This document shows, piece by piece, positions 3,501-21,110 of a stretch of DNA of 64,000 nucleotides. The stretch lies in contig CAJINV010000001.1 of NCBI GenBank assembly GCA_905178155.1, forward strand, positions 13,842,664-13,906,663, given 5' to 3'. The stretch is from Amoebophrya sp. A120 (taxonomy: Eukaryota; Protista; Dinoflagellata). The first letter of the stretch is position 1. Each line of letters opens with the position of its first letter. Made by a program: the position numbers and the translations under genes. Under the pieces are notes generated by a model. The model ran no database searches and had not been told where the DNA came from. It saw nothing but the letters and a program-made list of their open reading frames with translations.

Positions 3501-4566
3501 CCCCAAGCCACAGAAAAACTTCTTCCACCTCAAAAGGGCCCGAGAGCAGCTGCCGGCGCTGCGCCGGCAGCTTGCCGTTACATCTTCGATCGTGCGCCCA
3601 TTGTTGGACTCGGAAACACGCCGGCGGGTTTTTGAGCGCACATTCGTGACGGATGAACACAAGGAGCTTTGTAGGTTCTTCAGTTTTTCCCCTGCTTCGG
3701 TCGGGGTCTATGTTTACCCGACCCTTGCCCCGTTGGATAATTACTTGGACTCCCTACCTGCGAGGTTCTACGATGCATGGAGCCGAGCGCGCTCCGAATG
3801 CAAGCAAACAGGCACGACTCGTTCTCGTATTAGTGAGAAGATTTGTGATGTCTCCGGGAGCGTCTCGGTCCTTGGGGCCGACGTACTAGCCAGCAATACC
3901 GTGGCGCGGTCCGTCGACACGTTTTCGACAACAGTAGCAGGCCCCACCCCCACCCCGGCTGAGCGAGAGCCCAGAAGCTTTGCACCTGCTTCCAGCGACG
4001 CCGCTGTGTCAGCAACACCCGCGGTGCTCAGCGGAAGCGGAACTGGCGGGCCTTTCGCAGCGCCCGTAGCGGACGACCTTATTTTGCTGCAGCAGCAAGT
4101 AGAAGAAAGTCAAAGTTTCGAGAAAGCATCAGAGCAGAAGAAAACTCAAACTCTGCGGGAACAGCTTCGGGCGAAGCTTCAAGTAGAGTATTGCGACATG
4201 CTGCTAAAGATCTTCGATCTGGACAAAGAGACGCGAATTACGCCCGACGCCTTGCTTTGCCATGAGTTTTTTAAGACGTTGAGGAACCTGCTCTACTCGG
4301 AGGAAGTTTCTGGTCCGGCAGCTACTGGCGGGGCTAAGTCGCAAACAAAAAACGAGAAACAATGCCCGGCAGGCGAACAACTGCTGATGGCTGGTGAGAC
4401 AGTTCCTCCATCCGGCCAGGAAGATAACGACAAAAGTACAGCTGGAAAAACGTCCCGGCAGTGTGGCATCGGCAAGAGAAAGCGGAGCATGAGCAGCAGC
4501 AGTAGTGGGGCAGAGGGTGCAGGCGCGCCAATGGACGTAGATGCAGAGGGCGATCAAGTGCGGTAA
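553..4566 (+). CDS. Ser/Thr protein kinase, CMGC group (SRPK/DYRK-like), two exons 553-1660 and 2789-4566 (~960 aa; true start may lie further upstream)
   Basis: ORF 535-1902 has GRGQYGTV, VAMK and HTDLKEAN. ORF 2815-4566 has KIGDFG, TSYRAPEV, IDMWSFG and RITP..LLCHEFF. Removing the 1661-2780 element plus one CTATTTCG copy joins them in frame (HTDLKEANTFVYF|DPNDFPRPLVFVKG). Confidence 0.85.
1661..2780. mobile_element. 1,120-bp TIR element acting as a non-canonical intron (introner), 8-bp TSD
   Basis: Imperfect ~54-bp TIRs TTACAGCTTGGACG...GCGGTGAATTTC.AGTGATTTTAG at both ends. Perfect direct repeat CTATTTCG at 1653-1660 and 2781-2788. No transposase ORF. Confidence 0.9.
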
Positions 4567-5755
4567 CCCCTTCCACGCCAGCCCTCTGGGTGTAATTGCT
4601 TACGGTGTACTGCCTAAGGAAAATGCGACCGTCGCAGCCGCGCCGTGTCTACAACGCCACGAGACACATGCCGTGCCTTTTTTGAGTACTGAGCTACGAA
4701 ATGCGGCTGCCGCTGACGCATGTGCCTATAGTTCTTCTTTGAATTGCAATTGTTTTTTCCTTGTAAGTATGTTTCATCGTTTATGTTTTTTGCGAAAGCT
4801 CGACTTCGCCTTCCCCAAGGCCCCTAGCGCGCATGAAGTATCATGTGTCAAACCGTGCATAGTAGGACGAAAACGCGTGCCAACAAAAACATACTGAGTG
4901 TTTTGAAAATGTTGTTGATTAAAACGCTTTCGTCTCATCTGAAGCTGAAGAAACTGATTGTGATTATCCTGTACGCGGGTCGTGATTGTTTGAAAAAAAA
5001 CTCTTCGAGGCACGTTCGCAGTCGTCTTTCTGGTTGCCAAGCTGCATTATTTTGAAAGCCGACTGGTGGCATCATGTTCCGTTTGTGAATTGCAAGCGTC
5101 CCTTTTTCGTGGGAAAGCGGCTTCCCGTGAACCATGGATCTTCGTCGGGATATTCGTCTATGTCTCTATGAATAGTCGCTCGCGGTCGCGTTTGCAGATG
5201 ATCGAGGCATGCAATGTTGAAGTAAATTTATGATTCGTGTTGCTGTTCGTTGAAACTTTACATGCAAAAAATATAAATCCATAAAGAGAAACAGGAAATG
5301 CACGTTGGAATCGCTTTATGCGTGTCGTTGTCGTTGTATTTCGTGACAAAGCTTGATCAGTCGGTGCAGCTGCACTGAATTTTTAATATCGTGAGGTATG
5401 TCTATCTTCATGATCATGATCGTCTCTCACTCTCCATATCTATGCCGTTTTCGCAGGAGGTCCGTGGTCGTGCTCATGTTCAATCGCCTTATTGATGTTC
5501 TGTCATTGTGGTTTGGTTGTTGGCTATTTGTGATCATGCAATAGAGTTCTTGCGATAGCGATAGCGATTAGAGCTTATTTCCTGACGCATGTGCACTTTG
5601 TTCGCTTCATCTGCAGGGTGTTTTTTCTCTGTTGTGTGCGTGAAAAAGATTGTGCCTTGTCAGACGAAGGTGCTAGCACTGTGCGGCTACTTTACCTCAT
5701 TAATTGACTTCTGCCACACGAGGTCTGATTCAATTCCGTAACACACAGAAACAAA

Positions 5756-8700
5756 ATGGAGACGTTGGAGGAAGATCTCGATGCGGTGTTGACGCAGTCA
5801 AGATCCATCTGGAACCCTCTGAAGAAGCGGACTCTCACCCTCCGCGAGCTGCAGAGAGCAAAAGACGAGTTGCAGCGCGCCAGTGCGCCGCCGACACGAA
5901 CCGACTTCTACCACCCGCCAGCCGATGTTGCTGACGGGCTCCTGCGGACAACGAGAGGCGAGCACGATTTTTTGGATGGCGCAGAAGAAGAGAAAGGCGA
6001 CGGGTTTCTTTCCGGAGGGGACAGCACCACGAAGTCCCGCGATGTAGCTGCTGCTGGCGGCGCTCCGGGTGCGAGTCAGAACAGCCAGACCGGCCCTAAG
6101 CCCCCCGGGTTGAACTTGAACGGCGGTCAGCCGGGTCCTCTCGGGGGCAACGACTACCACTTTTCGAGTACGAGCAACACGCCGTCCGCAACGCCCCCAG
6201 CCTCGGGAAACAAGACGCAGTCGAAAGAGTCGAACGGGCCGACGTCCCAGACCCAGCAGCCCGAGAGCATTGGCGAGATGATGGAGCGGAGGCAAAAGGA
6301 CAAGCAGAAGAAGCGGTCACTTTTGGACTACATGAAGGAGTTTGAGAAGTTTCTCACCCTCGAGTCCGCGAAGAACCAAAATAAGGGCCACTTCCTGAAC
6401 GACAAGCGGCTGCTGAAAAAGCTGATGGACTTTTTGGACAAGGGGAACTTTGACATCATGGCGGATTTGGGGCAAACGAACGAACCCTACGCGGAGCCCT
6501 GGAAGCTGCTCACGGTGTACCAGCTGGCGACCCGGCACTTGCAGAAAATCAAGCACGGGCGCTGGTTCGAGGACAAGAACCTGGCGGAGTATTTGAACTT
6601 TTCCGTCGAGGAACGAACCCTTCTGCGCAGGCTCTACTTGCAGCTTTGCCAGGCACACAAGGTAAGTTAGTACTCACTGTTACTACGTGAACTTTTTCTC
6701 GTTTGCCTTTCTGATTCGAACCTCTCGGCCGCACGTTCGCTTCGATCTAGAACTGGTAGAACGCTTGCATGTCGCGGTGTTTTGTTCCAACGTCGCACAA
6801 GCTGACCGTCAATGCAATGAATTACTTGCACTACCAGGATGCCCGCATCGTGGCGCAGCTACTGCAAGGGAGGCGGAAGACCGGGAAGTTGCTGAAATCC
6901 CCAGGCAGCGACTCCGACTCGAGTTCCGCTAGCCCGAGCCCCCGGCCGTCCTCACCGGAAGAGGGCGACGTGGACAGTCTGGCGTCGGACGAACTGTTGA
7001 CCATGGACCCGGAAGACTTCGCGCCGCCGGACGTCCCGCGCGTGGCGCGTGGCTCGCCACTGCAACTGAACAAGGAAACGGGAAGATTGGAGATGCCCGA
7101 GGGCATGAAAAGTCCCAGCGGCCACACTGACCAGGTGCACTTCGATCCCAACAACCCGGAGGTCTTCAACTTTCTTCCCGGCCAGTCCTCCGCCGCTAAT
7201 TTTGGGGTGCAGTTCAGCGTCACCGAGCCGGTGGAGAAGACGAGGAGAAAGCTGTACCAGGTGCTGACCCCGCGCACCCGCAGAAACGTCCGCGCGGAGG
7301 AGAAGAAGGGCCGCATCGACGCCACCGCGCTGTCGCTGTACGCAAAGTGCGCAGTGCAGTGCTTCCGGCTGAGTCAGCAGGCGGGGAAGTGTGTGTCCAC
7401 CTTACAAAACACGCACTTTCTGGACATGAACGACGTGGCATACACCGCCGCAGACCCGGCGGCACTGCTGGTAGCCCTGGAAAACGAGCAGCTGACCGAA
7501 GAGGAGGCGGAGCGCCTGCACTACGAAGCGCAGATGTTCGATCTGATCACGCGGTCGTCCGCGAAAAACGCGGTGAGAAGGTTGCCGAGGTGTCAACCCC
7601 GGCCGGATTTCAATGAGCCGCAGCTGCCGATCGAAGTTTTGGTCAACCTGTGCTACAAATTCGGACTGGTAACCGAGCGGTTCGAGGCTCGGCGCTGCGT
7701 TACCGAGTACCTAGAGAACCACAACAAATTTCTCGAGGTTTACCCGCGAGCCAGCGGGCTGGCGAAGGAAGACCGGAGCTACGCGCAGTTCACGGAACGG
7801 GTCTCGACCGTGCTGCAGGCGCGGAAAGCACTGCAGTTTGAGGACTTTTTGAACGTGTTGTCGTGGAAGAGCAAGCACAACCTAGACTTCGGCAACGATC
7901 TGCGAGCGCTGCTGAAGGACCAATACATGAGACGGTACTTCTACATCGACGACCTTGTAGTCTAGTCGTTAAGATGATGTTCCAAGAAACCAAGAGACTT
8001 CTTCCGAAGAAGTCTCTTGGTTATGCGTTTGCGTTTTTATTTTCCATCGATCCTGTTTCATCAACTTCAACATCAATCAACAAGCATAAGCAATGCTGTC
8101 ACTCTTTTTCTTCTTCTCAAGAATAACTAACAATGAGAATAACTCGAGCTCGACCTTTCCCACAACACATCGATCTATGACAGGCACGGCATTATCGAGG
8201 TGGCGGGCGCAAAAGTTGGCGACCGGTACTCCGTTATGAACTGCAGAAGTATCGTACTAGTATAAATCGCATGACAAATTAGCTTAGCGTGACAAATGGA
8301 ATTTGTCATGCTGTTTTACCTTGGGATGAAGATTTGTAATGCATGACTGCGATTACTACGAGTGCGATACTTTTGCACAGGATATTCGTCTACCGGGACG
8401 TGTTCGATTCGCTGCCGAACATGATGAACACGGTGGAAAGCATATCCTGAGTAAAAACGTACCCACACCAGAGTTGTAATGCAAATCTGCATGCTGAAAA
8501 TGTTTCTCATGCGGAGCTCCATGAGAAGCATTCTCTAGTCATGTTTTGCAATTTGTCATGCTCCAATCAGCATGGTAGGCTAGATCTGTGATGCTGCTGA
8601 GCTAGCTCAAACAGCACTACACTACGAATCCAAATTTGTCATGCAAAACAGCCAAAACTTGTGGATTTGAAACAATATCAAGTTTGGCACGCTTGGAAAG

Positions 8701-11700
8701 TGTTCGTGGTCGCGGTGCTGGCGAAGTTATGGGCGCGCGACAAGGGGTATGCGGTTAGTAGGGGATTGCCAGGCACCCTACGTTCAGGTAAGTTCCGTCG
8801 CGACTCTGGCGTAAGACCCCCGCCCCCCCTCCCACCCTTTGCTTCTGTTGCAGAATAAGTCAAGGAGTTGCACTCTGACCGCCACGCACAAACTAAACCT
8901 TTAAGTTGTCGCCAGTCAGCAGTGACAAACAACTGGCCAATGGTTTGACATCTCCGGTCCGCGGCACTTGCCTTTTTCGCCCGTGCCGCAGGTAAGGCAC
9001 AAATGGTCCAGCCTCCCCTGTCCGGGTGGGGTTGCGGCTTAAGGGAGAGTCTCGCCCCTTAGCCCAAAGGGGTGCGTCGTCTCTTCCGTGAGAACAAAAA
9101 CTTATGGCGTAAAATGGGTCGGGTCCTGGGTCGTTCTGTATGCTGGGCTGTCGCGCTCGGCTTGCTGGCCGGGCTGTACTGATCAGGTGTGGTGGGTAGC
9201 TCCCGACTGGTTGGCACTTTTAATGGGGCGACTTGCCGTGGTAGCGCTCGGCTTTTGTATGTTGAGGTTGCCGAAAGTGCTTCCTCGCCCACCCCCCGGG
9301 GAGGGGATCCTTGACCTGTGGCGCTGGGTGCGGGTGTCCACTACATGACGATGATGATTTGTCTAGCCGATTCCCCATCTTGACTCTGGTGTGGGTACGT
9401 TTTTACTCAGGATAAAGCATGAAGACCGAGCTGCTCATTGACACGATTATGCGCGACCTGGAGGTCAAGCAGAAGCGGCGCGTGCAGGCCGCCGGTGCGA
9501 AGGGTGGCGCGCAAGCGGTGGTGACCAAACCTGACGCGATCCCGGGCGTGGTTGCTTTTGGCAAGACGAAGCCGCCCGCGCGAACCGGCACACCGACGAA
9601 CAGTAACAAGCCCGGGATGAAGCAAGGCAGCGCTCCGGGTGGAACAAAGCCCGGATCCGAAAAGAAGGGCATCTTGAAGAAGGACAAAGACGAGAAGAAG
9701 AAAAAGAAACGTGCGCTGGGCGCTCCTGCCGCCAGCCAGGTACCTTAGTTAATACATTTAGGGCATCACATTCTAGGTTACGCAGTCAGCATGCGGGCGC
9801 GCAACCTCGTGAGGACCGGGATGGGGGGACCACCATCTGTGGCCCCATCTTTGTACAAAAGGCTCCGACAACAATCGGAGCCTGTCCGTGACCAAGCCCA
9901 AGCGGTGGTCAGCGAGAGCGAGCGGGGAGGCGGCCACCCTCCCGCGGCCGCCACGCGCGCGCCCGCCAAAGCCACGTACCGTAAGGTGAAACCGTCGGCG
10001 CCGATCGTTACGTACAGGTTAGCCCTGGACGACCGGAGCGCGGGTCAAGCCGACCCAAAACCAAGACGAAAGTCTAACGAGGGACACCTCTGTGCGCCCG
10101 CCGTATACCGCCCCGCACCTCTGTGCGACGGTCCCAGCCCGAAACCCCCGGCTTCGGCGGGGGGCTAGTAGGGACTTAGGATGGAAGGCTGTGAAGTGCG
10201 TCGCGTGCATGAATCTGACAGACACTACTCCACGACACATGCAAGATTGACACACAAAGCGCAAGCATCACATACGAACGACACACACCAGCCGACCGTG
10301 TGGCACCTCTGTGGCACGGCTAGATAGGGACTGCGTAGCCACCTGTTCGCACAATTTGCGCGTAGGGCAATAGAGATCTGAAATCATGCAGCGACGTGCG
10401 TTTGAATGCCCATGGAGTGCTACCTCATTGATTTTGAGTTTGCCCATGCACGTGATCTGTTGATGCCTCTGCTTCTACTTCTACTACGAATGCTGATGGT
10501 TAACGTTTTGGCTTGACTTGGAAATGAAATGGCTCTGCACTACTTTGGTTTTTATCCAAACATTTACCACTTGATGCCTCTTTGGCTGTTTCGCCACTTG
10601 ATGTTTCTGCTTCCGCCAACGATGACGATGCTGCCTTTTCATTTGGAATTTGTTTGTGGCTCTGGAATGATAACAGCGACCATCTGATGTGCTTTTAAGT
10701 TAATAGTGCCCTACAACACACTCATAAAACTCAAAACAAACATCCGACGCTGATAGAGCAGCAAAAACTTCTTCCCTTCCTGTTTGGCAAACGAGCTTGC
10801 TGATCAACACCATACGAAATGGCGCAACCAGCAACGGCAAAGGATTACTTCAAGTTCGACGGACGGCTGTCGCTTCAGCCGCTGGGCTCGGATCTTGCGC
10901 AGAAGTTCCGGAACTTCTACCATGGCTACGACTGTGCCGGCCAGCAGGCAAAAGACGACCTGGGGCAGCTCTGTGAGCGCGTCGTAACTTCGGGGGGTGT
11001 GCAGGAGCTGACCGGACTGGACCCGGGCAACGTGTTCCAGCTGGACACGGCCACAATGACGTTTACACCGGCGCAGGCGGAAGTAGCGGCGAAGATCTGC
11101 ATGCTGCAGTTCTTCAGTGAGCGGCACGCCAACGACGGCGGCCTGTCGAAAGGATACGACATGGTCACGATGCAGAAGATGAAGGACTACGCCCTGGCGG
11201 TGCACAATCATCAAATTGCGGCGATCAACAAGCCGGGGGCTTGGACGGAACTGCTCAACACGGTCGCAGGGCAGGCCAACGCGTGGCTCGGCGTTGACAT
11301 CGACCCGGCAACGACCATCCTCATCCACACCAGCAACCAGCCTCCCACACATCAGGAAGCGATCAATGGCATGCTGGGAATCCCCAACCCGCCGGTGCCG
11401 AACCCGAACCCCAACCCGCCGCTACCGCCGGTGCTGCCGCCGGTGTTGAATCCGAACCCGCCCGTGCCGGGGCCGAACCCGAACCCGCCAGCTCCGGGAC
11501 CGAACCCGCCGGCTCCGGGGCCGAGCCCGCCGGTCCCGAACCACAACAACCCGCCGGCACCGCCGCCGGGCGGGGGACAGCAGAATCTCGCGGGAGGGCC
11601 AAACGCCGGCAACCAGCCGGCGTACATGACCATCACGCAGTCAATGGTGGATGTCCTCCGCAACATGTCGGGGCAGTCGGTGGCCGCCCCGACGAAGAAC

Positions 11701-14700
11701 AAGGTTAACTATGACGCCAGCAACCTGCACCCGGACCACGGCAAGCCGGGACATGGCGAGGTGCACACCCGCACGATGGGCGTGGTCAAGTTGACAGACC
11801 CAGTCAACCAGATCCATTGGAAGCTCAACCCGGACCCCCAGACGGCGAAGAGAAATTACGAGCTTGCGGTCGGACTCTGCTGCGACTTTAACCGCATGCA
11901 GCACTGCCAGGTGGACCACCATAATGTCCTGCTGGTGGCGGACTACGTGCAGCTCGAAGGGGGAACCTTTGCGCACAAGTTGGCGGAGGAAAGCCGCCCA
12001 CACTTCGTCGCCAAGTACAAGCTGGCCATCCTTCTCGCCGTCCTTAACGGGGTCTACGGAGAGAATGTGCTTGCGGGTTCTCGGTTGAAGCGCGCAGCCA
12101 GTGGCGTCGGGCTGGACGCCACACCGTCCGCGATCGAAAAGTGGCAAGGCGTGGGCAGCCTGAATGCCATGGACGTCAAAACGGTGGAGGACGTGCTGGT
12201 GGATGTCGCGGCCTTGCGCAACACGCGGGGCAATACGAAGCTGGACAAGGACTTCCTGGCAGGTTGCGACTTCGCGCCGGCCCACGAACTGCTTCAGCTG
12301 GTCAACCGCAGCCCGCAGCTGAAGATCGAGGACGCCCGGCTGGTGAAGTCAGTCTACACCCAAAACCGCTGGAAGCAGGTGGAGGACGCTTACACCGTGA
12401 TGAAGCAGTTCATTGCGGTCCACGACGGGCTGGAGGCCACGGCGGTCACGGATGCCCTGACCAACTTCAAGGTGCAAATCAATGCCATGAGCAAAACGGA
12501 CGCCCTTTGGCATGCCTTGCCCGTTGTGATCTTCCTGACCCAGCAACAGGAGGAAATAATCCGCATGTACGCGCCGCTAGGCGTCCCGACCCTGGCGGCG
12601 CCGATCCGCAGCGCCATGTTCATCGTCAAGCACGCCTGGACCCAGATCACCGCCCTTGTGCCGGCCCGCAAGGCGAGGTTTGGAACCGTCGCCAACCAGG
12701 ACAAGGACCAGGGGCCCAGTAGCTCGGACGATGACACTGTGGAGTCGGGGGACGAACAGGAGAAGAGCGCTGGCAGAAAGCCCCGTGGTGGCAAGCCCAC
12801 CGCGGCGGAGAAGAAGAAGGCGATGAAGCGGGAACGCACGACCCGCAGGGGCAACGGGGCGACGCAGCGTACAAAGCCGCCGGTGGATGACCTCAAGAAG
12901 GACGAGATGTGGGCCCGCATCGTGGACAACCATCCCACCGACCACAATACTGCCATCAACCGGGTCGGCAATGGCCCGGACTCGGGGGCCAGCGCACCGA
13001 TGCGCAAGAGGGACGTCGCGGACAAGATCCGCAAGGACCGGGGCGACCCGGTGTACCGCCGCTCTTGGGACAAGGTCGTAGACTGCTGCTGCATCGATGG
13101 AGTGTATTGGTTCGTGCGGGGAGGTGGCACGATCGAGCCCTCCTGCGTGGCGGAGAGCGAGAAGGCGGAGTGCGGCTCGCCGGACTCCTTCTGCCGAGCG
13201 TGGTCCAACCACAAGTGCAACCGCAGCGGAAAGTGCGAACGCCACCACTGGCTGAAGGTGAAAATCGAGAAGAAAGCGTGGAAGGAAGTCGTGCTGTCGC
13301 AGCGGGGGAACTAGTCAATGGGGCTAGCTCTAGGCATGGCCTTACCGCCTCACCTCTGTGGGACGGGCCGCCACCTCGACTACCTCTGTAGCGAGTGCCG
13401 CCACGCTTTCCACCTCTGTGGGGCGGGCCGTAATACAACCACCAACGGGGTACCCAGACGCGCAGTACGCCTGGAGCGCAAACGTGTTTCATGTAAGTAC
13501 TCGCACGCACCTTGAGCCACAAATTGAACACATGCTGCCCACAGGTTGTTTTTGAAAAAATTAAAAAAATTCAACGCGCTCGGCACTAGCTTCGTGTGGG
13601 GGCAGAACACGTAGCAGGCAGGCGCGCAGCACCCGCGCAACCGCGTACGACGTTGGTAGCAGGGCACCTCTGCAGTTTCTAAGCGTAAACGGCCCGCCAC
13701 CCTTGTGTGGCATCCTCGTACGTTTTTGTTGGTTCCCGAAACATGAAAATGGACAAATTCCCACCCTTTGCAGTAACATGAGTTGAGTTTCTAAGCGTAA
13801 ACGGCCGTGGCCCTTTTGTGCGGTTTTTTGCTGGTTCTCGTAACATGAAAGTAGAGAAATTCCCACGCTTTGCAGTGACAAAAACCGAGTTTCTAAGCGT
13901 AAACGGCCCGACACCCCCGTGCCGCATTTTCGTACGATTTCGTTGGTTCTTAGAACACGGAAGGAGACAAATAGCGACCCTTTGTAGTGTTAGCCTTTTA
14001 GTCTCCAAGCGTAAGCGGGCCACGTTTGTTGTAACTCGTTTGGCCCTTCTTTGCAATTAAACAGAACAAAGCAGGAGCACAGTAGATGCGGCCGCACTCC
14101 GCGTTTGCGGCGGTTGCCACCCGGCCGGACGCCAACCCCTTCGCCACGCAGGCCGCCGCGGGCCCTGAAGCTGCGACGCCGGGCACCGAGGAGTACCAGA
14201 AGCTACTCGATGCGGGCCTGGACGCGACAGTCAACTCCGCGGCCACACTGGAGAAGCGGGAACGGGTCTGGAAGCAATTTCTCCGCTACTGTGCCGCGAG
14301 GGCACCGCCAGTGCTTCCGGGCAACATTGAAGTGAGTCACTTCCGGTACTTCGGGCTGCAGCTGGCCGCCGACGGGGCGCCCAGTCCGAATGACACCATG
14401 GGGCAACTCATCATCAAGGCGATGGACACACCCAACGCCCTAGCACCGGACACGGCGGGGATGCGGGTGATGGAATTCGCCCGCTGCCGCAGGGACGTGA
14501 AAGCCGCCACACAAAAGAACGACCCGACGCGAGCCATCCCGGCATTCCTCACTGCAGATTTCACAACACTGCCGTGGCGGGCGGTGAAGCAGCTCGCGCT
14601 CATGATGCAGCTGGGCACGCGCATGGACACAAACTGCGCCATTCTGCCGGAGGACCTCCGCTACGAGCCCGACCGCCTGCTGGTCTATATTCGCACGGAC

Positions 14701-17700
14701 AAGGTGCGTAGCATGGAGAAGCGCACTGTGGCCATCGGTTGCAACTGTGCGCAGGAGGGTAGCAACGTCGACCGGCAGTGGTGCCTCCTCCACAACGACG
14801 CGCTGCGACCGGTGCCCCTGCCCATTCTGCTGAGCGAGTGGGGCGACGGGCATGGCAACGCAAAGCAGAAGAAGTTCCTCCAGCTCATGGGCTGGACACA
14901 GCAGAGCTTCCGCCGCTACCAAGCGCTAGCAGCCCGGTACTACATCGAAAGGCGCATGCTTACCTTCGACCTGACCGGCTGGATGCGGGGCCGGGGCTGG
15001 GGAAAACTCAGCACCTTCCTGCGGTACTCGGGGGATTTTAGTACCTGGAAGCACTACTTCGCGGAGCGCGCGAAGTGCATGCCGGTGCTGGGCGCCATCC
15101 GGCCGCATGCCGTGGCATCGGTGAAGCAGCTGGCCGCTCACCTACGGTTTTCCGGCGACGTCGTCTTCAAGGATGCAGCCGGCGGGAGCGACCAGGAGTA
15201 CAGTGGGTCAGACGGTGAGCCGGGGAAGCCGGCGGGGCAGGCACAAGAGGGACGGAAGCGCAGCAGTGTGCTGTGCGAGGAAGCGCTGGATCCAGTGGAA
15301 GACGAACCGTTCTTCAGCAAACGGGGCAAATCGGCGGTGCCGAAGCCGCACTACCTGAAGGTGCCGCATGGACTGCCGCCAGGAGTTGCGCCAGCCCTCC
15401 AGCTGGCAAGCGCGCCAGCACCCTCCACGGCCCGGCCCATGAAGACCAAGGCCGCGACGCACAGTAACCGCTCCACCGCTGGAACCAGACCCGCACTACC
15501 GGCCGAGAAGGTCGCCAGCGGCAACCTCTTCATGCACCAGGGCAGACATTACGTGAAGCGGATGGAAGTCTGCCCTGCCTGCCCTCCACATAACGTCACG
15601 AACCGCAAACACCTACGAGAGCCACCCTGTTTACGCGACAAAGCCGGCAAGATTCGCATGGCGGAGTAAAGCCACAGGGCGGCGGGATCCGGATGGAGGC
15701 ACCAGCCACGCGAACTTGGATTTGATGCAGCCTCCGCTGCGCCCGGTGTTGCCACCTCCGTGGAACACTGGAACACGGCCCGGGCCACCTCTGTGGCCGG
15801 GCAGGGGGACGCCTCGCTGCCACCTCTGTGGCACGGGCGTCACGGTGTGGTCCTCGCTGTGCGCCTCGCTGCTGTAGAGCACGGTTTGAATACTGGAACT
15901 TGCGAACGCTACAGACCCGGACCTTTTCTCGCCATTGTGAAGGGTGTGACTCACCAGACAGTACAGAAATAAACGCAGGAACTCCGGCGCCCCGACCACC
16001 CCAGCAGCGGGCAATTTGTGGAAGATTTGTGTTCCGACGAACGGATCACGTGTGAGCAGAGATCAGCACGGCAAATTTGTATCAAAATGAAATGACTCAA
16101 TCAGGTACCAGCAGGGCGGAAACGTGCGCTGGGCGCTCCTGCCGCCAGCCAGGTACCTTAGTTAATACATTTAGGGCATCACATTCTAGGTTACGCAGTC
16201 AGCATGCGGGCGCGCAACCTCGTGAGGACCGGGATGGGGGGACCACCATCTGTGGCCCCATCTTTGTCACCCCGTGGCCAGCCCTCGCCTTAGATAGTTA
16301 GGCCCAGGTAAGCGCCTATACTTAGTTTGTGTTTTGCCGGGCAGTTTCCTAACCCGATGCACGCCCCGAAGGCGGGGCGCGAGTTTAAAAAGAGCAGCCC
16401 CGGAGCCTCCGCTACGAATCCCGCTGGTAGGGTGAAGACCAACGGGCGGAAGCCTCCCAAGCTGCCCTCCCTGCACTGCCGCCCTGTTTGCAGCGACCAA
16501 CGGCGCGCGCGGACCGACCAGCGCGCAAAGCAGTATGTTTGCGTGCTATTTGAGATCCTCGCGTTAGCGTACTTTCACGGCCTTTATTGCGTGCTACAAT
16601 TCCCTGGACCTCCGTGTTGTTGTTGCCCATGACTTGCATGAAAGTTCGGTAGGAGCTCTTAGACCCTCGCGCATGTCACTCGTAGACAGTTAACTTCGGC
16701 CAGCATCTGTATCCCCTTGATCCGCAGTGTGGCGGTTGTGTTTCTACTAAACGACAGGTATAATACCAAAACATGGTCCACCCGACCTGCCCGGCCTCTC
16801 CGCCAGAAGGCCCGGAGACATTCGCACGGCCGTGCACGCAGCTGGCGCATGCGATCTACGAGGCGGTGCGATTTGTGCAAGCGGCGATTGTCATCGATAA
16901 AGCGGCCACAAGACTGCGGGACCGGCTCAAGCAGAACATGCGGGACGCAAAAACGTCACCGTTCCACTGGAAGGAACGCCTCCGCACCGCCATCATTGAG
17001 CTCAAGGAGGTGCAGGCCCGCACGGAGGGACCAAATAAGCAGTTGGTGGAGCAAGACGCTCCGCAGCACCTTCGTCCGGTTCTGACCATGGACGGCATCA
17101 CCCGCAATGTTCTCGCAATGCGGGAGCTGATCGCCCTCATAGGGCACCCGGACGTCGACTTCCCGAACAGGGTGCTCAAGGGCTTTGAGTCGATAGGCAA
17201 CACCGACGCAACGGGCCTCTTCCCAGACGACCCGAAGGCCACGCTGCAAGGACCTGACGACGCCGCGCTCTTCTTCCAGGCCGGGGTAACCCTCCGGACG
17301 CACAAGCCGTCCGGCTTCCCCGACCACTTACTCGATGCCGTACTAGACGAACAACTCGCATTCGTAAAACGCGGGTGGAGCATCCCGGTGGACCCGGAAA
17401 AACTCATATGCCAGCCGGCATATGTATTTCCAAAAGATGAGTCCACGGAAGTGCGGCAGAAGGTGCGCTGCATCGTGGACAGCCGGGCGAAGAACGAGCA
17501 CTCCGTCCTGCGGGAGAAAATTTCTCTCTATGGCACGAGAGTGCTGCAAGAAGTGCTCGCGGGGCTGATGGCGCCCATCGGACAAGAGGGCGCGGCGGCA
17601 CGCATGCCGGTCACCACAACGTCGCGCGGGGCCAATGCCAGCATGCAAGAAAATCTGGCCGCCTACAAACAGTGGCAGGCCGACGGGGAGCAGCGCAAGC

Positions 17701-20129
17701 CAGCCACGCGGGCCCAGTTACTCGCCGGCGTCCGCGAGGCCAACGACCTCCTGCAGGAGGAAGCCACCAACCACAACGGCGTGGCGGAGGCCGGCTCGGA
17801 GGACGTCTCCAAGGCCTACCATCAACTGGGGGTAAGCAGGCCGGACCACTGCCCCATCGGGGTTTGGTCGAACTTGAAGGCGGCTTATGTTTATTTTTTG
17901 TCGGTGGTGTTGAGTTTTGGCTGCCTGCACTCCGTACCCAACTGGGTCCGTGCGGCGGAGCTTTGTATGGCAATCGGCATGCACTATGGTTTAATAACAA
18001 TAATATACGTAGACGATGCTTATTTCTTCGCATTAGATCGTGAAGGCGCCGAGCTGTCCCGGGCCCTCTTCCGGCAGATTGCGGCGACTTTGGGCATCGT
18101 CCTCAGCACCAAGCCGGGCGCGCAACAGCTCTCAACAGAGGGCAACTTCCTCCGAGCCCTGGGCATCCACTACCAGTGGCACAGGTCCGCGACCAACACG
18201 ACCATCCGCATCACGGTACCAGCGGAAGCGATCACCAAGGGCACCGCCGCCATTGACGCCCTCTTGCAAGAGACCCACAGCGGCAAGATGGTGCTAAAGT
18301 CGGTCCAGCGGGTCCTGGGCCTTGGTAACTACATCGTCTGCAATACGTACTTCCGGGCGGGCTCGGAGCTTTTCCGGCACCTGTACGACTGGGCGGTGGC
18401 GGACCGCTTTGAGCGGATGCGGGGCGACCGCAAACAGCGCCGCCAGCTGCAGTCCGTCCTGCTCGCAGTGAAGTCCCTTCTGCAGGTGGTGGTCCCCATC
18501 GACATCTCAAAACAGCCACGGCAGTCCCGCATCGCCTTTATGTGGCTGGATGCCTCGTCCGATGGATCGCCAAGCGGCGGGCCGATGGGGGGCGGGGTCC
18601 TCGTCACGACGGAGGGCGTGTTTGCGTTCTCGTACGAATTCCCGGTAGACCGGATCGCCCGGTGGTGGCCGCACAAGCTAACCATCGAGCACTACGAAAC
18701 CATGACGGCCAGAATCGCGCAACTCACCTGGCGCCGCCACCTCACCGGCGCGGCGGTCTTCGGCAAGATCGACAATAGCGGGGAGCTCTTCGCGCTGGTC
18801 AAATGCAGCGCCAAAAGCCAGCTCACCGCCAACCTGGCCGCCAACGTCGCCGTGGCCGCGCACTCGATGCGCATGGCAGTTTGGTGGGAATACGTGAAAA
18901 GCGAGCTGAATATCAGCGACCCGTTCACCCGGGCCGCCCTCATGCCAGAAGCAATCCGCACATTGCGGCCCACCATGTGCCACATTCCGGAGATCGACTG
19001 GCAGCGCGAGTTTGCCCCACCGCAACTCCCGCAACCTTACGCACTCCCGGAGGAACGCCCAACGAAGGCACGGAAGTGCAAGAAGAACTGAAGCACGCGA
19101 CAGGCGCGTGCTCACAGCACAACTTGAGCCTGAGTCATGTCCTGACGTCTCTGACGCGAACTCTCTTTTTCTGTATGTAGCAGCACGATAGTGATAAGCT
19201 TAGTTTCCAGCAGGTGCGTGGAGTTCCTCCTCGACGACGCAGTGGCCGGCGAGCCACCAAACCCGGCCTACCACCGGTACCGGCAACCCGTCACCGCCCG
19301 TCGCAACCTCTGTTGTGGTGAACTTGGATTTGATGCAGCCTCCGCTGCACCCGGTGTTGCCACCTCCGTGGAACACTGGAACACGGCCCGGGCCACCTCT
19401 GTGGCCGGGCAGGGGGACGCCTCGCTGCCACCTCTGTGGCACGGGCGTCACGGTGTGGTCCTCGCTGTGCGCCTCGCTGCTGTAGAGCACGGTTTGAATA
19501 CTGGAACTTGCGAACGCTACAGACCCGGACCTTTTCTCGCCATTGTGAAGGGTGTGACTCACCAGACAGTACAGAAATAAACGCAGGAACTCCGGCGCCC
19601 CGACCACCCCAGCAGCGGGCAATTTGTGGAAGATTTGTGTTCCGACGAACGGATCACGTGTGAGCAGAGATCAGCACGGCAAATTTGTATCAAAATGAAA
19701 TGACTCAATCAGGTACCAGCAGGGCGGAAGGAGGAGAAAAAAGCAGAAGAGCCGAAGCGCCCACCTTCCACCGGGGAGGAAACCAAGGTGTCTATCGGGA
19801 TCTTGTCCAAGGTGAAAAAGTGGGCACACAAGCAGAGCACTATGTCGTCCTGGGACGATGTGGAGGAGGATGAGGTGGACGAGGACGAGCTGGATCTGGT
19901 AAAGGAGTCGCAGAAAAACGCGAAGTTCCGCTTGGGGCTGCAAATCCGGACAAATCTGGACGAAGACGCGGCCGGAAACGACGCGCGGAAGCTGTCTCTG
20001 CGCCAGCGGTGGCGCATGGAAATCCGGGACATGGACATCGTCGCCATGAAACGCGACAAGAGCGACGGGCTCGAGTCGTTTGACGACATCAAGCGGCACG
20101 TGCAGCAGGGACGCTTTTTCGTTGGTTAG
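5756..20129 (+). CDS. Host protein of unknown function (~976 aa). Predicted exons 5756-6661, 6760-7956, ~8149-8234, 8390-8442, 9420-9708 and 19730-20129; last exon interrupted by the YR retrotransposon
   Basis: GT-AG intron 6662-6759. Probable intron 7957-8148. Removing introners 8235-8384 and 8443-9414 gives a continuous GDRYSVYRDVFDSLPNMMNTVESMKTELL. Removing 9709-19729 gives in-frame KDEKKKKKEEKKAEEPKRPP, running into ORF 19788-20129. Confidence 0.7.
8235..8384 (-). mobile_element. 150-bp introner, reverse-orientation relative of the element at 44212-44361
   Basis: TATGAACTGCAGAAGTATCG...CGATACTTTTGCACAGGATA termini. Imperfect 5-bp TSD TCCGT/TTCGT. Colinear with the reverse complement of 44212-44361 and the same length. 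Confidence 0.85.
8443..9414. mobile_element. 972-bp introner with perfect 32-bp TIRs and 5-bp TSD
   Basis: TATCCTGAGTAAAAACGTACCCACACCAGAGT at 8443 and its exact reverse complement ending at 9414. TSD AAGCA at 8438-8442 and 9415-9419. Excision restores VES-MKTELL. Confidence 0.9.
9709..9854 (+). repeat. Split direct repeat A1 (146 bp)
   Basis: Identical by eye to 16122-16267. Confidence 0.95.
10819..13314 (+). CDS. gag: Gag-like protein of the YR retrotransposon (831 aa)
   Basis: First ORF of the element. Pro/Asn-rich linker, basic region and a C-terminal C-x7-C-x5-C-x3-H zinc finger (CRAWSNHKCNRSGKCERHH). Confidence 0.75.
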   Translation: MAQPATAKDYFKFDGRLSLQPLGSDLAQKFRNFYHGYDCAGQQAKDDLGQLCERVVTSGGVQELTGLDPGNVFQLDTATMTFTPAQAEVAAKICMLQFFSERHANDGGLSKGYDMVTMQKMKDYALAVHNHQIAAINKPGAWTELLNTVAGQANAWLGVDIDPATTILIHTSNQPPTHQEAINGMLGIPNPPVPNPNPNPPLPPVLPPVLNPNPPVPGPNPNPPAPGPNPPAPGPSPPVPNHNNPPAPPPGGGQQNLAGGPNAGNQPAYMTITQSMVDVLRNMSGQSVAAPTKNKVNYDASNLHPDHGKPGHGEVHTRTMGVVKLTDPVNQIHWKLNPDPQTAKRNYELAVGLCCDFNRMQHCQVDHHNVLLVADYVQLEGGTFAHKLAEESRPHFVAKYKLAILLAVLNGVYGENVLAGSRLKRAASGVGLDATPSAIEKWQGVGSLNAMDVKTVEDVLVDVAALRNTRGNTKLDKDFLAGCDFAPAHELLQLVNRSPQLKIEDARLVKSVYTQNRWKQVEDAYTVMKQFIAVHDGLEATAVTDALTNFKVQINAMSKTDALWHALPVVIFLTQQQEEIIRMYAPLGVPTLAAPIRSAMFIVKHAWTQITALVPARKARFGTVANQDKDQGPSSSDDDTVESGDEQEKSAGRKPRGGKPTAAEKKKAMKRERTTRRGNGATQRTKPPVDDLKKDEMWARIVDNHPTDHNTAINRVGNGPDSGASAPMRKRDVADKIRKDRGDPVYRRSWDKVVDCCCIDGVYWFVRGGGTIEPSCVAESEKAECGSPDSFCRAWSNHKCNRSGKCERHHWLKVKIEKKAWKEVVLSQRGN
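13675..14021 (+). repeat. Degenerate tandem repeat (three units of 102-112 bp plus a partial fourth) between gag and YR
   Basis: GTTTCTAAGCGTAAACGGCC at 13675, 13787 and 13889, variant GTCTCCAAGCGTAAGCGGGCC at 14001. The intervening sequences are also similar (GGTTC, CATGAAA, AAATTCCCAC, CTTTGCAGT). Confidence 0.85.
14086..15669 (+). CDS. Tyrosine recombinase/integrase of the retrotransposon (527 aa)
   Basis: Catalytic motifs in order: LGTR (R), RTDK (K), QSFRR (H-x-x-R with H replaced by Q), RGW (W) and FLRY (Y). Confidence 0.8.
   Translation: MRPHSAFAAVATRPDANPFATQAAAGPEAATPGTEEYQKLLDAGLDATVNSAATLEKRERVWKQFLRYCAARAPPVLPGNIEVSHFRYFGLQLAADGAPSPNDTMGQLIIKAMDTPNALAPDTAGMRVMEFARCRRDVKAATQKNDPTRAIPAFLTADFTTLPWRAVKQLALMMQLGTRMDTNCAILPEDLRYEPDRLLVYIRTDKVRSMEKRTVAIGCNCAQEGSNVDRQWCLLHNDALRPVPLPILLSEWGDGHGNAKQKKFLQLMGWTQQSFRRYQALAARYYIERRMLTFDLTGWMRGRGWGKLSTFLRYSGDFSTWKHYFAERAKCMPVLGAIRPHAVASVKQLAAHLRFSGDVVFKDAAGGSDQEYSGSDGEPGKPAGQAQEGRKRSSVLCEEALDPVEDEPFFSKRGKSAVPKPHYLKVPHGLPPGVAPALQLASAPAPSTARPMKTKAATHSNRSTAGTRPALPAEKVASGNLFMHQGRHYVKRMEVCPACPPHNVTNRKHLREPPCLRDKAGKIRMAE
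15712..16121 (+). repeat. Split direct repeat B1 (410 bp)
   Basis: Matches 19320-19729 with one visible mismatch (G15741 vs A19349). Confidence 0.95.
16122..16267 (+). repeat. Split direct repeat A2 (146 bp), abutting B1 (circle-junction mimic)
   Basis: Identical to 9709-9854. Junction GGCGGAA|ACGTGCG. Confidence 0.95.
16773..19091 (+). CDS. Reverse transcriptase-RNase H of the DIRS-order element (772 aa)
   Basis: RT motifs VFPK, KVRCIVD, DVSKAYHQL, LSFG, YVDD and LGI. DIRS-type RNase H motifs WLDAS, IEHYE, IDN and YVKSELNISDPFTR. Confidence 0.92.
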   Translation: MVHPTCPASPPEGPETFARPCTQLAHAIYEAVRFVQAAIVIDKAATRLRDRLKQNMRDAKTSPFHWKERLRTAIIELKEVQARTEGPNKQLVEQDAPQHLRPVLTMDGITRNVLAMRELIALIGHPDVDFPNRVLKGFESIGNTDATGLFPDDPKATLQGPDDAALFFQAGVTLRTHKPSGFPDHLLDAVLDEQLAFVKRGWSIPVDPEKLICQPAYVFPKDESTEVRQKVRCIVDSRAKNEHSVLREKISLYGTRVLQEVLAGLMAPIGQEGAAARMPVTTTSRGANASMQENLAAYKQWQADGEQRKPATRAQLLAGVREANDLLQEEATNHNGVAEAGSEDVSKAYHQLGVSRPDHCPIGVWSNLKAAYVYFLSVVLSFGCLHSVPNWVRAAELCMAIGMHYGLITIIYVDDAYFFALDREGAELSRALFRQIAATLGIVLSTKPGAQQLSTEGNFLRALGIHYQWHRSATNTTIRITVPAEAITKGTAAIDALLQETHSGKMVLKSVQRVLGLGNYIVCNTYFRAGSELFRHLYDWAVADRFERMRGDRKQRRQLQSVLLAVKSLLQVVVPIDISKQPRQSRIAFMWLDASSDGSPSGGPMGGGVLVTTEGVFAFSYEFPVDRIARWWPHKLTIEHYETMTARIAQLTWRRHLTGAAVFGKIDNSGELFALVKCSAKSQLTANLAANVAVAAHSMRMAVWWEYVKSELNISDPFTRAALMPEAIRTLRPTMCHIPEIDWQREFAPPQLPQPYALPEERPTKARKCKKN
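19320..19729 (+). repeat. Split direct repeat B2 (410 bp), right terminus
   Basis: Copy of 15712-16121. Confidence 0.95.
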
Positions 20130-21110
20130 TGGCGAGCAGCGCTCGACCTTCTGCTGTGTGTTGGCTTTGTTTTGCGTATCGTTTCTATCTCAGCCGATGT
20201 GGCACGAAGATTTGACATTTGTTTGACGTTTGGACATTATACTACATTCAAATACGATTCAAGTTTCTCGAAGTAAAAGTACAGTTCCTAGAAAATTCAG
20301 ATACATAGTACAAAAAAGCGCTGCTCTGTTATATAAAAATTGCAGTTGATGAACGCGATGATTATGATATACAACAACCACTTGTAGAATATGATTTGGA
20401 TGGCGATGGACGCATACTAGCTTTAGTCGTTCGTTGAACATGTACACCACTGTTTGAATGCATACGGGAAAAAGAAAAGCAATACATAGTCATACCATTA
20501 CCGACGAGCTGCAGTACAGCACTTTTAGTAAAGGACATTTTGAAGATTTTCGAGCTCAAGACGAGCGGGCAGACGTGTACTTACTTCGCTTTACGAAAGT
20601 AAGAGATTGAGATGCATATTTTTGATTTGCTCGTTTAGGGAGCGGAGTGAAAGTTCTGCCGACCGTTTCGACAGCAAGTAAGGGCGTTGCAATAGATAAG
20701 TTGCAGAGAGAAAAGTGGAGCGGCTTGTTTCTCGAGGAGAGAGGAGCACGTGATTTTGATGAACTCAGTTGTGCGGCCAGCGTGGTTGCTGTCGATTTGT
20801 TTGCATTGCAGGACCTCATTCTTGAACACATTTTCGCTACCTCAATATCCCTTGCCCTTTTTTGTGTTTCCTAAACGAAAGAATTCAAGCGTACTTCTGC
20901 ATTTTTAATTAGGCACGACATAAAATATGTGGCCAGCTGCACGTGTGCCACTCTGCTAGTGGTGTAGCAAGAGGATGGTTTGCTATTACAACGGGAAAGT
21001 TGCTTCCGTGTCGGCAAAGATGCGTGTTGATGCTTTGTCAGCGGGAAAATGTTTGGCACAGCTTCTGTGCTCCGACTAGACCCCAAATTTTTAGCCGCGT
21101 CGGCGTGAAA

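Follow-up and report, generated by a model that had tools for sequence, protein, structure and literature searches.

In this study, we examined a stretch of 64,000 nucleotides (nt) from the dinoflagellate parasite Amoebophrya sp. A120 (contig CAJINV010000001.1 of assembly GCA_905178155.1, positions 13,842,664 to 13,906,663 of the forward strand; hereafter, the window), in which a 10-kb retrotransposon lies within a coding exon of a host gene. An earlier note on this DNA, made from the sequence alone, had proposed that the ends of the element carry a matched pair of splice sites by which it could be removed from the host transcript as an intron. Our results make it highly probable that this is a tyrosine-recombinase retrotransposon, resembling those of the DIRS order, whose ends double as intron borders.

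Structure and proteins of the element

The positions of all features are shown in Table 1. Alignment of both element ends with the internal joint between repeats B1 and A2 revealed that the joint reads as the right end running into the left end and, to judge from the sequence, this split-repeat layout is that of tyrosine-recombinase retrotransposons with split direct repeats. No more than the triplet GAA is common with the target site in the window copy, in a second full copy of the same family (family 1; C4:10754345-10764516, approximately 91-96% identical to the window element) and in several short copies. A 5'-truncated fragment on another contig (L039; G000:C3:7233001-7241000, element part 3702-4696) covers element positions 5420-6414 and ends exactly at the end of B1, which hints that the first module (gag, tyrosine recombinase and B) can end alone and that gag - tyrosine recombinase - B and the remaining module may be, or have been in the past, separate units joined at a common site.

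Table 1 Positions and properties of the element, its host gene, further insertions and related families (ORF, open reading frame; RT, reverse transcriptase; a slash marks the cut at a splice site)
Feature	Position	Strand	Description
Whole retrotransposon, family 1	9709-19729	+	10,021 nt; sense orientation in host coding exon; delimited by repeat structure
Left remnant, kept in predicted mRNA	9709-9739	+	31 nt; encodes RALGAPAASQ; present in public protein
GT..AG intron, element minus 48 nt	9740-19712	+	9,973 nt; tblastn exon ends 9739 and 19713
Right remnant, kept in predicted mRNA	19713-19729	+	17 nt; encodes VPAGR-K
GAA crossover triplet	9706-9708	+	Common to host target, left border and internal joint; right counterpart 19727-19729
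Repeat A1	9706-9854	+	149 nt; 100% identical to A2 (16119-16267)
Repeat B1	15712-16121	+	410 nt; equals B2 (19320-19729) with one mismatch
Internal 48-nt joint (B end and A start)	16105-16152	+	Acceptor AG 16103-16104, donor GT 16153-16154; potential micro-exon by sequence
ORF1	10819-13314	+	831 residues; gag-like by position only; no Pfam match
ORF2, tyrosine recombinase	14086-15669	+	527 residues; invariant recombinase residues and protein atlas neighbours
ORF3, RT/RNase H	16773-19091	+	772 residues; YVDD motif and protein atlas neighbours
Host gene GSA120T00018532001, upstream part	5756-9739	+	By tblastn
Last host exon	19713-20129	+	138 codons plus stop
Sense ORF across predicted junction, window copy			108 codons before, 138 after
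Sense ORF across predicted junction, L031a			306 codons before, 34 after
Sense ORF across predicted junction, L034			184 codons before, 602 after
Sense ORF across predicted junction, L035			285 codons before, 502 after
Sense ORF across predicted junction, L036			192 codons before, 149 after
Insertions with long host duplication			Contigs C6, C45/C25, C8, C5, C2, C4 and C15
Family 3			RT 45% identical to window; 11.3 kb, split repeats; ACAG/GT...CCAG/GTATAG; joint 39 nt
Family 4			RT 30-35% identical to window; 17-20 kb; TCAG/GTACCG...GCAAG/GTATAC; joint 45 nt
Family 5			RT 31-34% identical to window; ACAG/G(T/C)ACGCG...GCGAG/GTATAA; joint 45 nt

The class of the element is indicated by its second and third ORFs. 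Among the homologues of ORF2 in four families of this genome, R179, K206, (H/Q)xxR276, W305 and Y314 are invariant, which is the pattern of a tyrosine recombinase. The nearest protein atlas clusters of ORF2 were ALOG and Phage_integrase (score 0.94), and a weak match to ALOG (E 0.14) was the sole Pfam match when the three ORFs were searched at E up to 10. The nearest named clusters of ORF3 were RVT_1 and RT_RNaseH (score 0.96-0.98), its assignment as RT/RNase H being based on the motif and on language-model features, and as a query it gave 24 RT matches in the genome. A 44%-identical RT is also present on a 13.8-kb NCBI contig (P0002). Sequence and profile searches of PDB with the element ORFs gave no matches, and an AlphaFold model of the recombinase built from a 5-sequence alignment (mean predicted local distance difference test score 37) was too poor for a fold search.

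Several features expected of the DIRS order were thus found: an RT/RNase H ORF, a tyrosine recombinase instead of a DDE integrase, and split direct repeats with a joint, a layout that recurs in family 3. The usual gene order, gag - RT/RNase H - tyrosine recombinase, was not found; the order here is gag - tyrosine recombinase - joint - RT/RNase H, and the element should therefore be considered a variant rather than a typical member of the order.

Splice sites within the element ends

The donor side of the element reads ...GCCAGCCAG/GTACCTTAG (context CCAG/GTACCT), with the G of GT at 9740 and 31 nt (9709-9739) before it, whereas the acceptor side reads ACTCAATCAG/GTACCAGCAGGGCGGAA (context CAATCAG/GTACCA), where AG occupies 19711-19712 and is followed by 17 nt (19713-19729); both sites lie at the positions and distances that had been claimed. 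It should be noted that CAGGTACC is repeated at both borders of the window intron, which leaves the register of the cut ambiguous by 8 nt. The 48-nt remnant of such a removal, described earlier as a stop-free multiple of three, contained zero stop codons in all six frames. Taken alone, its lack of stops is a weak observation, as about half of random GC-rich 48-mers were estimated to be stop-free in three frames. The host frame from the ATG at 9419 continues as KKKKK-RALGAPAASQ-VPAGR-KEEKK and then for 138 codons to the stop, and both the proposed peptide and the rescued C-terminus agree with this frame.

A GGTACC palindrome is present at both intron borders in the window (9739-9745 and 19712-19717) and in all copies of families 1 and 2. 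Wherever the donor side is GTACCT, the same deletion is also GT..AG on the opposite strand, and the contig alignment described below reported GT..AG antisense to the ORF. This opposite-strand reading fails in family 3 and, compared by eye only, probably also in families 4 and 5; it may be a coincidence.

The earlier note had also likened these sites to host introns. Its GTACT at 32722 (a candidate host intron) is present, and the 11-nt acceptor ACTCAATCAGG does recur at 33722-33732, in the candidate host intron 33495-33731; the 11-mer has three matches in the window, the other two in the element, versus 0.01 expected. This candidate intron starts with AG/GTACG and ends with AACTCAATCAG/G. The idea that it is a decayed copy of the element was rejected, since only 12 nt are common with the acceptor region of the element and the rest is unlike it.

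Public gene model of the host gene

When the last host exon was searched alone against protein representatives, residues 810-947 of a public protein of Amoebophrya sp. A120 (CAD7928381.1/GSA120T00018532001.1, 947 residues) matched positions 19713-20126 at 100%. This protein contains the predicted junction, RALGAPAASQ being followed directly by VPAGRKEEKK (...KKKKKRALGAPAASQVPAGRKEEKK...), and its exons, placed on the window by tblastn, are 5756-6661, 6832-7950, 8182-8235, ~8390-8444, 9416-9739 and 19713-20126. The public model also skips ~8236-8390, where the tblastn pieces overlap (window 8230-8444).

The A120 annotation, including its intron borders, was built from alignments of assembled transcripts, ab initio tools having failed on this genome (PMC7789003). 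No conserved relatives of CAD7928381.1 able to guide a gene model were found among the protein representatives. Considering both points together, we infer that a transcript with the window junction had been assembled. The proposal of a spliced host product is thus in line with a transcript-based model that reads exactly across AASQ/VPAGR, and there is strong but indirect evidence that the window copy would be removed exactly at the predicted junction.

Neither the last host exon nor the ORF that precedes the C4 copy gave a match in homologous-protein searches, blanks that are explained by the length window and low complexity and have no bearing on the question. Pfam yielded nothing useful for nine host ORFs flanking insertions, which agrees with reports that the proteome of this organism evolves fast.

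Sister copies and their removal

To extend the analysis beyond the window, the B1/A2 joint was used as query against 115.5 Mb of genome. Matches comprised the second full copy on C4, a few fragments and numerous short elements, 0.6-1.3 kb long, whose ends are related. A 20-nt core of the right end gave 27 matches versus 0 for the reversed control, corresponding to approximately 20 independent insertions, of which approximately 12 are located in different sense ORFs; that is, as with introners (transposons that act as introns), copies occupy introns of unrelated genes. Part of these copies form family 2, which is non-coding and has another interior but the same geometry, with 31 nt ending in CACAAG/GTACCT and 17 nt after GGATCAG/. 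AG/GT and CAG/GT were kept in all of the 17 copies that reach the donor. In an ungapped comparison, conservation was 97% for the last 6 intron bases and 96% for the right remnant, compared with 41-63% in the intron interior.

The most direct evidence for removal was obtained from contig C28 (L031), where a short copy of the family 1 type and a family 2 copy, with termini identical or similar to those of the window copy, lie 81 nt apart within one ORF. Introns of 559 and 824 nt had been predicted beforehand. In run X1, one 892-nt contig aligned to L031 with 0 mismatches as 2914-3371, 4196-4276 and 4836-5188, skipping exactly 824 and 559 nt, both GT..AG, with register ambiguities of 7 and 8 nt, and the 824-nt skip was confirmed in run X2, a second sample. 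Depth was zero in the interiors of the C28 introns and in the flank beyond the gene, which suggests that the contigs behave as RNA and not as DNA. The possibility that they represent an allele with an empty site was rejected, because such a site would miss 607 nt rather than 559, and the 48-nt remnant as well. In addition, a loose contig end at 4283 is identical to the 30 nt preceding the donor of a third copy (L034), joined to AG/GTACCAACAGG, indicating that this copy is also spliced. Removal from mRNA at defined borders is therefore indicated for the two C28 copies, by the loose end for L034, and by the gene model for the window copy.

One further contig of run X2 goes back 607 nt at L031:4265-4871, and in it the B end continues directly into the A start, the two overlapping by 3 nt (GAA). 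This contig may represent either the unspliced internal joint of a full element of the C4 type or a circular or tandem form.

Orientation, frame and insertion footprints

Most of the other copies were found in sense ORFs (examples are shown in Table 1). On the basis of a codon-usage score, which was trained on ORFs of three of the scored loci, approximately 11-12 of 17 copies were sense, 1 was antisense (L023) and 5 were flat. The 10-kb C4 copy lies in a sense open frame within a GAG repeat. Four copies (L014, L028, L029 and L039) are truncated past the donor, and all of them had flanks without coding signal (Fisher ~0.02, calculated by hand). The single candidate for the opposite orientation, L023 (G000:C5:735105-738260), may be antisense to a host ORF (109/62 codons; the codon score is positive for the opposite strand), but the length added is 84 nt, a multiple of three.

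In ten insertions (L014, L020, L022, L023, L025, L029, L030, L032, L035 and L036), 26-60 nt of the host, counted from GAA, are present as a direct duplication, and L031b on C28, in a host tandem repeat, is an ambiguous eleventh. The right end of these insertions is always exact, and the left end leaves 31, 17, 10, 4, 2 or 1 nt before GT or is truncated beyond GT. Such a footprint resembles target-primed insertion, similar to that of long interspersed nuclear elements (LINEs), more than insertion by a recombinase. The added exon length in the copies with coding context was 51, 60, 78, 84 and 87 nt, i.e. a multiple of three in five out of five (chance 0.004, at 1/3 each); three copies of unclear context add 92, 74/75 and 90/91 nt.

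The claim that any insertion costs the host only 16 residues thus holds for the window copy and has to be given up as a general statement, considering that many copies add a duplication of 29-60 nt of host exon and cost 17-29 residues. With these duplications the cost often exceeds 16 residues, and the frame rule is still kept where copies are coding.

More distant families

Based on the RT sequences, three more distant families were identified in the genome (Table 1), and both the sites and a stop-free remnant of a length divisible by three are kept. Among the outcomes that the earlier note had named as refuting its proposal were random orientation of other copies and loss of the sites or of the length in relatives; all three of these checks came out in favour of the note. 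Taking the joint length as the stretch from acceptor to donor within the internal joint, the remnant or joint is 48, 48, 39, 45 and 45 nt long over the five lineages. All joints of families 3-5 are multiples of three and stop-free in the three sense frames, and their sequences are unlike that of family 1. In addition, the predicted 11,269-nt intron of one family 3 copy interrupts a sense ORF with 68 codons on one side and at least 499 on the other. The presence of the layout in distant families suggests a trait of the clade and not of a single element, which is the main argument for selection at the element level.

Two other observations concern family 4. At G000:C10:1260735-1260777, overlapping matches to the patterns ...GGCGGCAAGGTAC and AAGGTACCGACC... 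revealed a left remnant joined to a right remnant in genomic DNA; by sequence this is a candidate for a spliced scar without intron, which might have originated from intron loss via spliced RNA or from a retrocopy. Moreover, all left-end (7/7) and right-end (9/9) matches of this family, on five contigs, are on the forward strand, which may reflect the one-directional gene clusters of the genome or chance.

Proposed mechanism and alternative explanations

On the basis of these results, we propose that splice sites are built into both termini of the element, a 5' site at 31 nt from the left end and a 3' site at 17 nt from the right end, and that the part from acceptor to donor would be the joint of a circular or tandem intermediate and is probably the recombination site. 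Once the element has inserted at a GAA of a coding exon in the sense direction, the spliceosome would remove all but 48 nt, so that the frame would be kept at the expense of 16 additional residues. Short non-coding derivatives of 0.6-1.3 kb with the same ends, present at about 20 sites, would act as ordinary introns, that is, as introners. It appears reasonable that the ordinary GT-AG spliceosome does the removal, that the 48 nt are a recombinase site, and that the layout reflects adaptation of the element and not a filter acting on insertions. Much of the spliceable-retroelement proposal is supported by the layout, the removal of sister copies and the bias in orientation and frame, whereas its description as an adaptation is still our interpretation.

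Several points weigh against this proposal. First, a recombinase site would be conserved for its own sake; if the 48-nt core is one, part of its conservation is no argument for splicing. Second, more than 60% of the introns of this organism are non-GT-AG and are removed by an unknown route (PMC7789003), and the 7-8 nt repeat at both borders makes the GT-AG register only one of several possible. Third, the evidence for the window copy is a gene model. Fourth, runs X1 and X2 carry the label 'RNA?' by guess only, the certain RNA-seq runs X9 and X10 contained too little parasite RNA and gave 2 and 0 reads on L031, and, since the contigs are strandless, the host strand rests on ORFs and codon usage. 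Finally, five copies are without clear coding context and one may be antisense, and three independent joint lengths that are all multiples of three have a chance of only ~1/27.

An alternative with a small chance of being right is that there is no design at the level of the element. AG/GT at both ends would then come along with the recombinase site as a by-product (families 1 and 2 have the GGTACC palindrome after AG), and the observed copies would reflect survivorship of spliceable in-frame insertions. As the joint of the replicative form, the 48 nt would be conserved for recombination; GGTACC does occur at both borders; and selection on insertions is evident. However, family 3 has no GGTACC and families 4 and 5 have none at the donor, yet AG/GT on both sides and a stop-free joint divisible by three are present in each of them, and copy L033 has lost the palindrome and kept GT. 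Furthermore, the joint length belongs to an element lineage and not to single insertions, and survivorship alone therefore cannot give 48, 39 and 45 nt.

It is also conceivable, although unlikely, that the donor and acceptor serve mainly the expression of the element itself, as retroviral splice sites do, rescue of the host being a side effect. Each of the two modules is bounded by a donor and an acceptor, and splicing from 9740 to 16104 or from 16153 to 19712 would yield separate messages for gag/recombinase and RT. The internal joint has the same acceptor and donor, the ORFs begin 0.6-1.1 kb behind each donor, and the run X2 contig that goes back 607 nt could be the unspliced joint of a full copy in RNA-like data. 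On the other hand, the non-coding short copies keep both sites equally well, no partially spliced product was seen among the RNA-like contigs, and a stop-free joint divisible by three is irrelevant to sub-genomic messages, yet holds in five lineages. Expression of the element in this manner is compatible with intron borders at its ends.

Removal by the non-canonical route of the Amoebophrya hairpin introners, using the direct repeat at the borders instead of GT-AG, is quite improbable. The published introners of this species have direct repeats of 3-5 nt at their borders and most of its introns are non-GT-AG (PMC7789003), and the cut register here is likewise ambiguous by 7-8 nt. On the other hand, neither a terminal inverted repeat nor a hairpin was present at the ends of the window element (a repeat search over 9000-20500 gave one unrelated internal inverted pair), the two end sequences are not complementary to each other, and a GT-AG register was found in every copy and in five lineages, even with the direct repeat down to 5 nt. 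Finally, that the window copy stays unspliced, a recent insertion (A1/A2 and B1/B2 are 100% or nearly 100% identical) having broken a gene whose model joins two unrelated transcript pieces, is hard to believe despite the blank homologous-protein search for the last exon, because the GT and AG of the model are precisely those that the sequence alone had predicted, with the frame kept for 138 codons, its borders come from transcript alignments, and identical termini are spliced on C28.

Intron borders built into the element therefore remain our preferred reading. With somewhat less assurance, we consider it fairly probable that in a whole clade of Amoebophrya tyrosine-recombinase retrotransposons the recombination joint has become a translatable mini-exon, stop-free and of a length divisible by three, between a 3' and a 5' splice site, so that both the autonomous elements (10-20 kb) and the short copies derived from them would live as introns in coding exons. 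This would be the first source of introners from the DIRS order, with a second, LINE-like mode of insertion that duplicates 29-60 nt of exon.

Implications for the origin of introns

The origin of introns is an old question, and the current answer to it is specialized transposons, or introners, the list of whose classes has been widened lately. We have not found a description of tyrosine-recombinase retrotransposons among their sources. The location of both splice sites inside the element, together with a joint of its own that is stop-free and divisible by three in five lineages, argues that the element has been selected for harmlessness within genes. Such built-in intron borders would suit a compact, gene-dense parasite genome in which safe intergenic landing sites are scarce. 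At C10:1260735, only the remnant seems to be left, and this site would document intron loss with a coding scar. The system is testable, as it offers young autonomous 10-kb copies in expressed genes, short derivatives and two distinct insertion footprints.

Comparison with known systems

Introners were reportedly described as intron-generating transposons by Huff and coworkers in 2016. Earlier cases of transposons removed from transcripts include maize Ds and dSpm and Tc1 of C. elegans, whose exon insertions are spliced out via sites within or near their ends, which softens the mutation. The window element resembles them in that an exonic transposon is removed from the mRNA via such sites. Removal of Ds, dSpm and Tc1 is usually imprecise or proceeds via cryptic sites, and we know of no conserved in-frame remnant that is common to whole families of them.

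Compared with the split-repeat elements of the DIRS order (Ngaro- or PAT-like; for the mechanism of DIRS-1, see PMC7192593), the window element has the same RT/RNase H and tyrosine recombinase, the same A1...B1A2...B2 layout with a joint made of the joined ends, and an insertion without target duplication beyond the common triplet. It differs from them in that the joint lies between gag - tyrosine recombinase and RT/RNase H, the proteins are too divergent for Pfam, and splice sites flank the joint. Moreover, many short copies have target duplications of 29-60 nt and 5' truncations, which would be unexpected of recombinase insertion.

The Amoebophrya hairpin introners (Farhat et al., 2021; PMC7789003) occur in the same genome and are likewise repeated introns with a transposon-like spread. 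A short direct repeat over both borders, as known from them, was also found here (7-8 nt; CAGGTACC in family 1 or AGGTACC in family 2). However, the hairpin introners have terminal inverted repeats of 8-20 nt and mostly non-GT-AG, variable borders, and their analysis was limited to introns of 40-1000 bp, whereas the introns described here have no inverted repeat of 8-20 nt between their ends in the range searched, always show a GT-AG register, have a retroelement partner and reach 10-11 kb.

Two reports, from 2022 and 2025, describe introners derived from many classes of transposon (Gozashti et al.; PMC9860276, PMC12130899); going by the main text of the latter, the classes are terminal inverted repeat (TIR), long terminal repeat (LTR), non-LTR, Helitron and Crypton, A120 is named as bearing introners of non-LTR, LTR and TIR origin, and intron formation by autonomous LTR elements is also described. 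DIRS and Ngaro are absent from that main text, and the families described here may be contained in its Dataset S2, unclassified or as 'LTR'. Full-text literature searches for DIRS with introner, and for DIRS with splice and exon, gave nothing relevant. Within the reach of that main text and these searches, the remark of the earlier note that it knew of no such description for the DIRS order agrees with our results, no DIRS-order element with a translatable junction being found. Thus, intron-making transposons, including those of this species, and the public gene model with the junction were known, whereas the meaning of the window intron seems not to have been described. As in known introners, a multicopy mobile element is removed from exons as spliceosomal introns, and both autonomous and non-autonomous copies make introns. 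In contrast to the published classes, the element here is a tyrosine-recombinase retroelement whose two splice sites are internal and at fixed distances from its ends, and the remnant left in the exon is the element's own joint, stop-free and a multiple of three.

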